A DNA stretch of 64,000 bases, from sequence record PP355768.1. The stretch is one strand, 5' to 3'. The notes under the pieces were generated by a model. It saw nothing but the letters and a program-made list of their open reading frames with translations. It did no database searches and was not told the origin of the DNA. This document shows, in pieces, positions 5,391 to 21,397 of this stretch (positions are counted from its first letter, which is position 1; each line of letters begins with the position of its first letter). The position numbers and the translations under genes are program-made.

Positions 5391-5783
5391 TTAGCGATTT
5401 AACGGGTGGTGTTCCACACAGTAATCGTTAAAGATCTTGGCTCGCTTGATACTATCCGGTTTATACTTAGCGAACGGGCCTTTCAACGCCCCCTGTACGA
5501 TGAAGATGGCCTTACACAGTCTGCCGATGGTCTTGCGACTCATACAGCGTAGCTCTGCGGCATGCTTACCGTTACGAAGCTCTAGGATCTTATCGAAGGA
5601 CTTCAGGACACTCGATGCATCTTTGGCACCACCTCCTGCGATGATGGCCTCGATATCTTTACGGGTGGCAAACTTAGCCAGGAACTCGAAGGCTTTAGCT
5701 GACAGCAGCTTAGCAGAGTCCAGACCATGATTGATACCAACTGCCATCCACGCTGATACTGCCAGTATAAATAAAGTAAACAT
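5391..5783 (-). CDS. Hypothetical protein with N-terminal hydrophobic segment
   Basis: 130-aa ORF, GAGGAA SD. Confidence 0.75.
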   Translation of the reverse strand: MFTLFILAVSAWMAVGINHGLDSAKLLSAKAFEFLAKFATRKDIEAIIAGGGAKDASSVLKSFDKILELRNGKHAAELRCMSRKTIGRLCKAIFIVQGALKGPFAKYKPDSIKRAKIFNDYCVEHHPLNR

Positions 5784-11385: not shown

Positions 11386-11461
11386 TGGAGCGACTAGGGG
11401 GAATCGAACCCCACTCAGTACCGCTTGGAAGGCGGACGCTGTAACCCGTACAGTTAGTCGC
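11386..11461 (-). tRNA. tRNA-Gly(TCC)
   Basis: Canonical cloverleaf, CCA end. Confidence 0.95.
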
Positions 11462-11599
11462 GGAATTATTTTATTACGCAAGTGCAGCCACCCGAGAATA
11501 TAGATCCGTAACACTTGTCGCACATAACGTCTTCTATTTTAAGAACTCTAAATTTCATAGGGGGTTATTACCTGTAGTAATATGCTTACCTTTTAGGGT

Positions 11600-11669
11600 T
11601 GCTGGCTTCCGGAATTGAACCGGAATTTAATGACAATGTAAACTTAATCACACTGTAACCATAACCAGC
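11600..11669 (-). pseudogene. Degenerate tRNA (intact acceptor and T arms; no CCA, no anticodon stem)
   Basis: GCTGGTT/AGCCAGC acceptor, TCCGG-TTCAATT-CCGGA T arm. Confidence 0.6.
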
Positions 11670-12906: not shown

Positions 12907-13015
12907 TGGAAGTATCAGTTGGATTCGAACCAACGCACCGGCTAACCTAGAGATCACCAGACGTTTCCAAGTCTGCTCACTAACGGCCAGCTGCTTTACC
13001 GTGAGCTTTAGGACT
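12907..13015 (-). ncRNA. tRNA-like RNA with helical extension replacing the anticodon loop, CCA end
   Basis: D arm GCT-CACGGTAA-AGC, T arm GTTGG-TTCGAAT-CCAAC, encoded CCA. Confidence 0.75.
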
Positions 13016-13048
13016 ATTCAGCTCCATAAGCTATTGATACTATTAATT

Positions 13049-13126
13049 TGGTGCAACCGGTTCGATTTGAACGAACGACCCCTGGACTTTCAAACCAGTG
13101 CTCTCACCTCGCTGAGCTACAGTTGC
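13049..13126 (-). tRNA. tRNA-Phe(GAA)
   Basis: Cloverleaf, U31:U39 mismatch, CCA. Confidence 0.9.
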
Positions 13127-13207
13127 GTAATTCGTGCCTGCTCCTTTGAATCAAGAAGTCCACCCCGGTCTTTGGGTCTTTGCAGTACATCACGCTGCTC
13201 TGATGTT

Positions 13208-13295
13208 TGGTGGAACTTGGGAGACTACGTGCTACTCCCCTCACAGACCGGGATTCCCCGCTATCTATGATGCTTAACCGATTAGCTGAAGTCCC
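13208..13295 (-). ncRNA. Anticodon-less tRNA mimic with alanine identity
   Basis: GGGACTT/AAGTTCC acceptor (G3:U70), A73, CCA, D arm, 11-nt T loop. Confidence 0.75.
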
Positions 13296-13301
13296 ATAAT
13301 G

Positions 13302-13377
13302 TGGTAGACCGCCCGGGACTCGAACCCGGAACCTATCGCTTAAAAGGCGAGTGCTCTAACCATTGAGCTAGCGATCT
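13302..13377 (-). tRNA. tRNA-Lys(TTT)
   Basis: Canonical cloverleaf, CCA. Confidence 0.95.
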
Positions 13378-13955: not shown

Positions 13956-14047
13956 AACAACCAAAGCGCTTTCGTCCATTTAAGCTACAAGGCCTTTATG
14001 CCGCCTGTTGCGTACGCGGGATTCGAACCCGGATCTCTTTGATTGTC
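13956..14047 (-). ncRNA. Circularly permuted tRNA-like RNA (YrlA-like topology)
   Basis: T arm precedes D arm; ends pair as an 11-bp stem in the anticodon-stem position. Confidence 0.75.
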
Positions 14048-14052
14048 AAAAT

Positions 14053-17573: not shown

Positions 17574-17667
17574 TGATGCCTCGACTACACCGGGCTGTTT
17601 AAGCCCCGCCAGGATTCGAACCTGTTAAAACAGTGTTTCCACCAGCCGTAGGTTTCACTGAACATCA
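17574..17667 (-). ncRNA. T-arm-containing RNA with paired ends
   Basis: TGATGTT/GGCATCA closing stem; GAAA hairpin; CAGG-TTCGAAT-CCTG; GC hairpin. Confidence 0.6.
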
Positions 17668-17765: not shown

Positions 17766-17844
17766 TGGTGGAGGATAACGGATTTGAACCGTTCTGATTC
17801 CCGCATTGCAAGTGCGGTGTCCACTCCCAGCAGACCCATCCCCC
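17766..17844 (-). tRNA. tRNA-Ala(TGC)
   Basis: G3:U70, A73, CCA. Confidence 0.95.
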
Positions 17845-20153: not shown

Positions 20154-21397
20154 CGCCAGTAGGTAGGGGCCTTCCCCTGTTTAAGCTATGCGGCCCTTCT
20201 GTCAGACGTATCTTCCAGTTATAGTCAAGGTGACTAATATACCTTGCCAGATCCCGGCCAACGGATATCCGTCGGCTAATGCGGTCTAGGCGAGGGCACA
20301 CTCCAAACAGGGGCACTTCTAGCCTGTGTAAGGGTGCTATAAATAGTGGTTATGCTTTCGCTCGGGGTGACTCCGGTCATGACTCCATTGTCACATGCTT
20401 ACACAGGGTATACGAGCTTCCGCGGAGCTGTATACTCAACCGTGTCCCACTTAGGTCTCGGAGCCACCGTTTGTACGAACGGCTATCCGAATACTCTTTC
20501 CCACTTAGAATCAGGCGAGATCCCACCTCGCCAAAGTTCATACGATCATCATGCCGTATTTAAGGACTAGCTTTGGCACTTCTGGAGAGCCATCCTCCAC
20601 GCGGTCTGTTAAAATCACACCTCCGAATTTTCGATGTGAAGTTTGGCTATCTCTAGCCTTCCAGCGTATGGTCGCTTCGCACCTGCCACTCTTACGTTCA
20701 AATCGGTTTAGGTGGTGGCAACCCTCCGAAGTTCCGAGTTTGGTTGAGGCCGTCAGGTTTCCTCGTGGTTTAGCTGTTTCGTTCCCGCGAGTCTCCCAAG
20801 TCTTTCCCTGGGAGGGGAGGAGGTACTCCAGCAGCGAGTGGTTCGCCAATAGAACCATCAGTTATCTAGCTCTTTCCGACCGCAGGATTCGAACCTGCAC
20901 TTTCCGCATCTGGGGATAGCTCCCCGCGTGCAGAAGTCTACCAATTAACTTAGGACGGCAGTGTTGCTACATAAGTGATTTCGACACCCCACTATGGTGG
21001 CAATAACCAGCACCAGACGCTATACACATGTCTCCAATTTGCAGCCTAGGCAGGTCAGTGTGGGAGCTATACGAGTTTCTCAGGCTCAGTTCCCCACCTC
21101 TCCGGCAGGCCACGCACCATGCTTCATTCTGGTCGAACAAGTTAAAGTGAGATTCCACCATTTTCTATAAATCAGGAGAAGAGTTTACGAGACTCCGGGA
21201 CAGCTCCCGAGTTTTACAAGAGATCTCTAACCTACGCCCGTCCAATACGCTCCCTGGCCGGTATCCGGACTGGATGCACGAACTTTGTCAGGTGATCACT
21301 CTTAACTCACCGATTCTATTCAACGAATCTTAATGCTCGACGAGTCTTACATTAAAACAAGTTCAGCGTAATCGGCCCGCTGTTCTCTCTAATTTAT
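20154..21397 (-). ncRNA. Candidate giant structured RNA (~1.2-1.3 kb, possibly more than one RNA)
   Basis: No SD-led ORF; over 20 hand-found helices; embedded tRNA-like domain; dedicated promoter. Confidence 0.65.

Follow-up and report, generated by a model that had tools for sequence, protein, structure and literature searches.

A conserved anticodon-less tRNA-like RNA gene with alanine identity marks in the tRNA clusters of T5-like phages and in N4-like phages

The window (the 64,000 nucleotides of sequence record PP355768.1 analysed here) derives from a Klebsiella Sugarland-type T5-like phage, whose tRNA cluster lies on the minus strand and holds 25 tRNA genes detected by ARAGORN. Between two of these genes, tRNA-Lys(UUU) and tRNA-Phe(GAA), lies an 88-nt element with the fold of a tRNA-like RNA (Table 1). 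In GenBank records, the locus is either blank or occupied by an antisense open reading frame (ORF) annotated as a 47-aa hypothetical protein (e.g. in phage Roth37). The minus-strand sequence reported for 13208–13295 in a first-pass annotation of the window is an exact match, and the 171-nt region around the element is 100 per cent identical in phages Roth37, Roth50, and Sugarland. The spacer between the element and tRNA-Phe (13127–13207, minus strand) is ~97 per cent conserved in Salmonella and Escherichia T5-like phages that do not carry the element, and no significant fold was found in it (z = −0.86). A scan of the tRNA cluster for sigma-70 promoters and terminators gave no improvement over shuffled sequences.

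Table 1. Coordinates of the tRNA-like RNA gene, its parts, and its neighbours in the window.
Feature	Position	Strand	Remarks
Whole tRNA-like RNA gene	13208..13295	−	88 nt; G1 = 13295, A of CCA = 13208; based on sequence and fold
Acceptor stem, 5' strand GGGACUU	13289..13295	−	G3 = 13293; G1, G2, and G3 unchanged in 20 variants
Acceptor stem, 3' strand AAGUUCC	13212..13218	−	U70 = 13214; C never substitutes for U70
Discriminator A73 (13211) and genome-encoded CCA (13208–13210)	13208..13211	−	fixed in all variants
D arm GCU-AAUCGGUUA-AGC	13272..13286	−	tRNA-type; equivalents of A14, G18, G19, and A21; nearly invariant in the family
Central arm UCAUAGAU-AG-CGGG-GAAU-CCCG-GUCUGUGA	13241..13270	−	in place of the anticodon arm; a hairpin in every lineage
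T arm GGGAG-UAGCACGUAGU-CUCCC	13219..13239	−	11-nt loop at 13224–13234, not the canonical 7-nt T loop
6-nt spacer CAUUAU after the CCA of tRNA-Lys	13296..13301	−	U at −1 relative to G1
Upstream neighbour tRNA-Lys(UUU)	13302..13377	−	ARAGORN and Rfam
Downstream neighbour tRNA-Phe(GAA)	13049..13126	−	ARAGORN and Rfam; 81-nt spacer (13127–13207) between it and the element

The centroid fold of the minus strand of 13208–13295 is a cloverleaf, which bears out the anticodon-less cloverleaf drawn in the first-pass annotation, and the minimum free energy (MFE) fold departs from it solely in the register of the T arm. The MFE of −30.9 kcal/mol (z = −2.77, with an equally good fold in two of 200 shuffles) is a modest single-sequence statistic. 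In the window copy, the acceptor stem consists of the pairs G1:C72, G2:C71, G3:U70, A4:U69, C5:G68, U6:A67, and U7:A66, so that the G1:C72, G2:C71, G3:U70, A73, and CCA listed in that annotation are all present in the sequence. The central arm, flanked by A26 (13271) and G44 (13240), is made of 8 bp, an AG bulge, 4 bp, and a GAAU tetraloop (12 bp in total), and it therefore has no 7-nt anticodon loop. A single nucleotide, the entire variable loop, joins this arm to the 5-bp T stem. The 11-nt T loop that had been noticed at the outset is supported by the fold, and it reads UA-N-CACGUAGU in every variant from both phage families in which the element occurs.

Homologs were found, by BLAST and pattern scans, in about 100 phage records, which contain 20 distinct variants that belong to six lineages. 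Within the family Demerecviridae, the carriers come from four genera: Sugarlandvirus (Klebsiella phages), a subset of Epseptimavirus (e.g. Escherichia phage TrudiGerster, with the element at 77811–77898 of MZ501108.1), a subset of Tequintavirus (phage 5 [AJ604531], OSYSP, NBSal003, and Elw), and Myunavirus (phage My1 of Pectobacterium). The same scans gave no match in T5 itself. The remaining carriers are N4-like members of the Schitoviridae, namely Salmonella phage As2, Klebsiella phage MY01, and two metagenome contigs. In phage 5, the copy is unannotated and occupies positions 5688–5762, between ORF trn 2.10.1 and RNAIV (AJ604531). The annotated end of ORF trn 2.10.1 falls 13 nt inside the 5' end of the element (L004:400-570 versus 558-632); the two therefore overlap, unless the ORF is itself a questionable call.

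Outside of phages, a strict pattern combining the D arm and the T loop retrieved no bacterial copy from one genome each of 185,579 bacterial species, and only three contigs from metagenome data, while BLAST searches with the element against 5,426 complete Escherichia coli genomes and 72,556 plasmids returned nothing. Two looser patterns were discarded: the T-loop motif alone hit 15 new loci in viral contigs, all of them chance matches inside coding sequence, and the T-loop motif followed by CCACCA gave chance matches only, both in viral contigs and in the 185,579 species genomes. Full-text searching of the literature found no description of the element. One IMG/VR contig, 3300008262_000025, has an element-like 5' half (GGGUUUUUAGCUAAACGGUUAAGC) followed by unrelated sequence and then by a tRNA-Pyl(CTA) called by ARAGORN (L053:5140-5280, minus strand); this stretch could come from an unrelated phage in which a tRNA gene is incomplete or rearranged.

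Covariation was assessed in a model-based alignment of 14 distinct homologs, with 500 shuffles as a control. In the alignment, 96.5 per cent of the cells are paired and 12 pairs are altered on both sides. None of the 500 shuffles matched either the percentage of paired cells or the covariation score, and three of them matched the 12 pairs changed on both sides. When the registers of the stems were slid, at most 54 per cent of the cells were paired in every case. The seven 88-nt sequences by themselves give the same picture as the full alignment. Within the acceptor stem, position 4:69 is A:U, G:C, or G.U, position 5:68 is C:G or U:A, and position 6:67 is U:A, C:G, A:U, or G:C across the variants. 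The first-pass annotation had suggested looking for covariation across Demerecviridae; these three pairs do covary, but the element is not confined to that family, as it also occurs in N4-like Schitoviridae. By contrast with this turnover, G1:C72, G2:C71, G3:U70, A73, and CCA are unchanged in all 20 variants.

The central hairpin varies in sequence by lineage and in length from 6 to 12 bp, and eight of its pairs are changed on both sides. Its loops comprise 4, 6, or 7 nt, and a 5-bp stem with a canonical 7-nt loop never occurs: where a loop has 7 nt, its stem has 7 bp, and either U33 or the purine at position 37 is absent. The purines that flank the central arm alternate between A.G and G.A, like the 26.44 pair of tRNAs. 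Little changes in the D arm or the T stem: the D loop is variable at two positions, and both stems have scattered single-base mismatches. Across the family, the loops are more conserved than the stems, a pattern that, judged from the alignment, is unlike that of a pseudogene. A 4-bp contact between the D loop and the T loop (GUUA/UAAC) can be drawn as a candidate; it is a conjecture, and single changes in My1, As2, and the window are uncompensated. A family covariance model (R1) detects the window copy with 112.7 bits (E = 2e-28) as the sole copy within the window, and it scores other family members at 57–114 bits and ordinary tRNAs at 26 bits or less. The D-arm motif alone was rejected as a marker of the family, since ordinary tRNAs share that D arm. 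For example, the D arm of a bona fide phage tRNA-Met is one loop position off the window copy and identical to the AAACGGUUA form found in the phage-5 and L015 variants; the motif is generic and not diagnostic.

The element is 75, 77, 80, or 88 nt long, length differences that are not multiples of 3, and there is no reading frame conserved across lineages on either strand. The G.U pairs fix the strand of the RNA as the tRNA strand. Together, the covariation, which is far beyond what chance would give, the strand preference set by the G.U pairs, and the absence of a conserved frame identify the element as a selected structured RNA; it is neither a fortuitous fold nor a pseudogene, and it does not code for protein.

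The element was compared with the RNA classes that it most resembles. Like a tRNA, it has a 7-bp acceptor stem, backed by covariation, with a discriminator base and CCA. It does not have the anticodon arm of a tRNA (5-bp stem, 7-nt loop, U33, and a purine at 37): the window copy has 12 bp and a GAAU tetraloop, and other lineages have central stems of 6–7 bp and loops of 6–7 nt without U33 or R37. It also has neither a 7-nt T loop (T-Psi-C-R-A-N-N) nor a variable loop of 4–5 nt. The Rfam tRNA model (RF00005) gave no match at E ≤ 10 to the window copy or to seven other variants, and ARAGORN did not call the element in its default, lowered-threshold, intron, or tmRNA modes. Two calls that the mitochondrial mode of ARAGORN made on N4-like variants were dismissed as meaningless. 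In three Demerecviridae lineages and in the N4-like phages, the central loops contain GAAU and AGUA, respectively, which resemble Phe and Tyr anticodons; decoding through these loops was rejected because their stems are 7–12 bp long and U33 or R37 is missing.

Like a tmRNA, the element has an alanine acceptor stem (G3:U70 and an NCCA end), but it departs from what tmRNA models require, namely a T arm of canonical form and, in the absence of a D stem, the D-loop motif of tmRNA. No model of the tmRNA clan matched the window copy or the seven variants at E ≤ 10, and neither did ARAGORN with the -m option; as a positive control, the Rfam tmRNA model (RF00023) finds the RNA of phage DS6A, which consists of the tRNA-like domain (TLD) only, at 43 bits. 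Across all of Rfam, the window copy and the seven variants matched no family either at the gathering thresholds or at E ≤ 10, apart from one meaningless snoRNA match. A six-base complementarity between the T loop and the tag region of E. coli tmRNA was within chance expectation and was dropped. The element is a small tRNA-like gene inside the tRNA cluster of a T5-like phage, as are the misc_RNAs annotated in AJ604531, but blastn of the latter against the window gave no match at 13208–13295 and so revealed no homology to RNA1, RNA2, or RNA3. As far as sequence and models can tell, the element is neither a tRNA, on account of its anticodon arm, T loop, variable loop, and lack of model recognition, nor a tmRNA. 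Its likeness to the TLD of tmRNA, invoked in the first-pass annotation, is an analogy only, because tmRNA models do not recognize the element.

Several other structured RNAs were observed in the window, all on the minus strand. A clean 76-nt cloverleaf at 11386–11461, with the anticodon loop CUUCCAA (UCC), U73, CCA, a 5-bp D stem, and a 5-nt D loop, was called by neither ARAGORN nor Rfam; it is probably the phage tRNA-Gly that is otherwise missing from the list of 25 tRNAs. A 73-nt tRNA-like sequence at 11597–11669 combines a 7-bp acceptor stem and a canonical T arm with one long hairpin in place of the D and anticodon arms; it ends in AACC, not CCA, and has no alanine marks. At 12907–13041, a 7-bp acceptor stem, a canonical T arm, and U73-CCA enclose a large structured insert; its length of 135 nt is comparable to the 145 nt of 'RNA1' of phage 5, and blastn found no similarity between the two. 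The 88-nt tRNA-like sequence at 20872–20959 lacks CCA; its D arm is of the tRNA type, its T arm is canonical, and a long hairpin occupies the middle. It shows homology to a portion of the 785 nt annotated in phage 5 as 'RNAX, stable RNA with unknown functions' (76 per cent identity over 146 nt). Isolated T-arm-like hairpins (GGTTCGAATCC) without a recognizable acceptor stem lie in inter-tRNA spacers at 13991–14051 and 17588–17666.

All 25 tRNAs of the window have an encoded CCA, and among them only tRNA-Ala(UGC) has G3:U70. This tRNA-Ala also has G1:C72, G2:C71, and A73, and no sequence relation was found between it and the element. The G3:U70 pair is the major determinant for alanyl-tRNA synthetase (AlaRS); it transfers alanine acceptance to other tRNAs and is sufficient in minihelices (reviewed in PMC9976931), and the role assigned to it in the first-pass annotation is thus well established. 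By the rule given in that review, the marks of an AlaRS substrate (G3:U70 in a regular acceptor helix, A73, and G2:C71) are all present in the element. Lack of conservation of G3:U70 had been named beforehand as evidence against the alanine interpretation, and the pair proved to be invariant in 20 distinct variants from six lineages. Because G3:U70 is fixed in all six lineages while three adjacent pairs turn over, selection appears to act on the wobble itself; a stem kept for its stability only would drift to G:C. Recognition by AlaRS, and probably alanylation, would be the best-supported property of the element. Two points speak against this reading: position 20 of the element is U and not the G20 by which E. 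coli AlaRS is helped, and the 5' GGG may have been preserved for a purpose unrelated to AlaRS.

In the N4-like phages, the element can be compared with empty sites, which are found in the sister genomes Pylas and S5 (L036 and L037). The insertion of ~80 nt is precise, with the U-tract of a terminator on one side and, on the other, the stop codon of the convergent virion RNA polymerase gene. The extra DNA (L032:395-503 and L011:565-671) equals the presumed mature RNA, from G1 to CCA, plus about 2 nt; comparison with the empty sites revealed neither accompanying flanking sequence nor target duplication. ARAGORN found no tRNA genes near the element in the surrounding regions that were fetched for these phages. 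Gain and loss of so exact a unit is an unusual observation in its own right. In T5-like phages that do not carry the element, the CCA end of tRNA-Lys adjoins the same downstream spacer. This arrangement and the precise insertion in N4-like phages indicate that the unit behaves as a cassette.

Several features of the flanks are those of maturing tRNAs. A U precedes G1 in five of the six lineages, the upstream spacing is the usual one for tRNAs of this cluster, and the trailers on the 3' side are rich in A and U; these features would fit tRNA-like maturation and an RNase P substrate. An L-shape, EF-Tu binding, and RNase P cleavage are nevertheless not guaranteed, because the T loop is non-canonical and the variable loop is one nucleotide long. 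In the N4-like phages, where the gene lies directly downstream of an intrinsic terminator, its transcription would need either read-through or an unseen promoter.

We regard it as likely (with a probability of roughly 0.7) that the element is a genuine, selected tRNA-like RNA gene, whose product is co-transcribed with tRNAs, processed, recognized by AlaRS, probably alanylated, and not used for decoding. Its expression, processing, charging, and downstream role are here read from sequence, and the following steps can be proposed. The element would be transcribed together with the phage tRNAs, cut at G1, probably by the RNase P of the host, and given its 3' end by the encoded CCA. The alanyl-tRNA synthetase of the host would then recognize it through G3:U70, G1:C72, G2:C71, and A73, and charging with alanine is the most likely outcome. 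It would be unable to decode, because a plain hairpin of variable length replaces the anticodon arm. Since the N4-like insertion consists of the ~80-nt RNA gene alone, the element is expected to be a self-contained module that works with host factors and without a phage-specific neighbor. The two loops with frozen sequences, the D loop and the T loop of 11 nt, probably come together in a special elbow, and their invariance suggests that a conserved host partner reads this part of the RNA. Our leading guess is that the RNA acts via its alanyl-acceptor end, perhaps in the manner of a mini-tmRNA, as a surrogate or a competitor at the level of EF-Tu, SmpB, or the stalled ribosome, or perhaps as a decoy for enzymes that attack the acceptor ends of tRNAs. 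The other anticodon-less tRNA-like elements of the window do not have alanine marks, and such RNAs may therefore share a role that is independent of charging.

Two of the alternatives that we weighed concern the function of the RNA. The closest to the reading just given, and in fact a specific version of it, is that the RNA, once alanylated, goes together with EF-Tu, and perhaps also SmpB, into stalled ribosomes whose A site is empty, or else that it titrates SmpB, and that in this way it blocks or replaces the trans-translation of the host. This idea draws on an analogy in overall plan with the TLD of tmRNA, which likewise joins an alanine acceptor and a T arm to a plain helix in the place of the anticodon arm, and on the precedent of the TLD-only ssrA gene of mycobacteriophage DS6A (L050:28478-28560). 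In the accounts of Mao et al. 2009 given in PMC4131195 and PMC11915505, a TLD-only-like molecule that was expressed in E. coli is reported to have inhibited tmRNA. However, the Rfam tmRNA model that scores the DS6A RNA at 43 bits recognizes no variant of the element at E ≤ 10, the tmRNA mode of ARAGORN is equally silent, and the element has a D stem and an 11-nt T loop and lacks the D-loop motif of tmRNA, which leaves recognition by SmpB unsupported; we therefore hold this version to be rather unlikely as it stands. About as doubtful, in our estimate, is the suggestion that the RNA soaks up a defense or toxin enzyme that hits tRNAs away from the anticodon (such as a nuclease, a 3'-end nucleotidyltransferase, or an aminoacyl-tRNA acetyltransferase) and so protects real tRNAs. 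Sporadic, cassette-like spread in virulent phages of two families is typical of accessory counter-defense genes, the sequence-invariant elbow suggests a specific protein partner, and enterobacterial defenses triggered by T5-like phages (Schlafen RorSlfn5 and PARIS) cleave tRNAs, including T5 tRNA-Ala (PMC13056530). Yet no known defense system is linked to the element, the best-known tRNA-directed defenses cut anticodon loops, of which the element has none, and a decoy alone leaves it unexplained why the alanine set in particular is fixed.

The other two alternatives deny the RNA a tRNA-like function of its own. It could be a degenerate tRNA kept solely as an RNase P or RNase E signal for cutting polycistronic transcripts of tRNAs and ORFs, with G3:U70 as a relic of tRNA-Ala. 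T5-like tRNA regions do hold several tRNA-like RNAs, including RNA1, RNA2, and RNA3 of AJ604531 and at least three more in the window, but a relic wobble should decay to G:C or A:U, whereas this one is fixed in 20 variants amid the turnover of other pairs. Moreover, the loop sequences are unchanged across two phage families, there is no sequence relation to the phage tRNA-Ala, and in N4-like phages, where the element comes after a terminator and is followed by the stop codon of a convergent gene, nothing downstream is left to process. These points make a pure processing signal improbable. That the locus instead encodes the 47-aa hypothetical protein on the opposite strand has hardly any credibility left: the ORF does exist in the window (13134..13277, plus strand) and is annotated in Roth37 and other phages, but no frame stays open across lineages on either strand, lengths differ by non-multiples of 3, substitutions compensate base pairs and follow no codon pattern, and the ORF also requires the spacer that other phages possess without the element.

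A selected, non-decoding, AlaRS-recognized RNA thus remains the interpretation that we prefer. An extended form of it, which we put forward tentatively and at somewhat less than even odds, is that the element stands for a family of alanine-accepting tRNA mimics that is restricted to phages, moves horizontally, and has an origin other than tmRNA. These free-standing RNAs would be charged by AlaRS and put to use outside the decoding pathway, where they might take over or obstruct ribosome rescue, or inactivate an immune enzyme directed at tRNAs.

To our knowledge, non-decoding tRNA mimics that can be aminoacylated are rare, being limited to tmRNA, the 3' ends of plant virus RNAs, and a few special cases, each of which revealed new biology. 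If the element is charged, it would offer a simple and genetically tractable system in which to ask what a phage gains from a codon-blind alanyl-RNA, a question with direct ties to current work on tRNA-targeting immunity and on ribosome rescue in infection; one of its carriers, TrudiGerster, was isolated on E. coli K-12. Here, an ~80-nt module with alanine marks frozen by selection appears to have been exchanged between two unrelated families of virulent enterobacterial phages. The element is invisible to standard annotation and shows that tRNA finders overlook some of the structured RNAs in phage tRNA clusters.

Among known systems, the closest functional precedents are the TLD-only mini-tmRNA of DS6A and the tmRNAs without a coding sequence of some organelles (PMC4131195, PMC11915505). 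Like the element, the DS6A RNA is encoded by a phage, is ~80 nt long, and has an alanine-type acceptor with G3:U70, a T arm, and a plain helix, without any decoding or tag part. It is, however, derived from tmRNA, has a canonical T loop and no D stem, and ends in CUA, whereas the element, which belongs to virulent enterobacterial phages, combines a D arm of the tRNA type with an 11-nt T loop and has its CCA encoded. With tRNA-Ala, both that of the host and the phage's own (17766–17844), it shares G1:C72, G2:C71, G3:U70, A73, CCA, and a D loop with G18 and G19; it differs from tRNA-Ala in the absence of an anticodon arm, in its one-nucleotide variable loop, 11-nt T loop, and U20, and in its unrelated sequence.

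Three further groups of RNAs bear comparison. The 'tRNA-like RNAs with unknown functions' RNA1–3 and the stable RNAs I, III, IV, 2H, and X of AJ604531 occupy the same niche in the tRNA cluster and have acceptor-like stems, but those that we inspected have canonical T loops and no alanine set, and the element is not among the annotated RNAs. In its presence in N4-like phages, its alanine set, and its non-canonical T loop, the element stands alone among the tRNA-like RNAs inspected. The stable RNA species 1 and 2 of phage T4 (rnaC and rnaD) are also small, lie in a tRNA cluster, and mature together with tRNAs; we know of no alanine identity set in either of them. The tRNA-like structures of plant RNA viruses (Val, His, and Tyr types) are likewise viral mimics that are charged by a host synthetase and do not decode (PMC4810235). 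Those structures form the 3' ends of genomic mRNAs, have pseudoknotted acceptor stems, and include none that is specific for alanine, whereas the element is a free-standing small RNA of DNA phages. Non-decoding tRNA mimics that can be aminoacylated are therefore already known, as are tRNA-like RNAs in phage tRNA clusters; what is new, judging from the literature searched here, is a free-standing, alanine-marked family that is not derived from tmRNA, has an 11-nt T loop, and is common to Demerecviridae and Schitoviridae.
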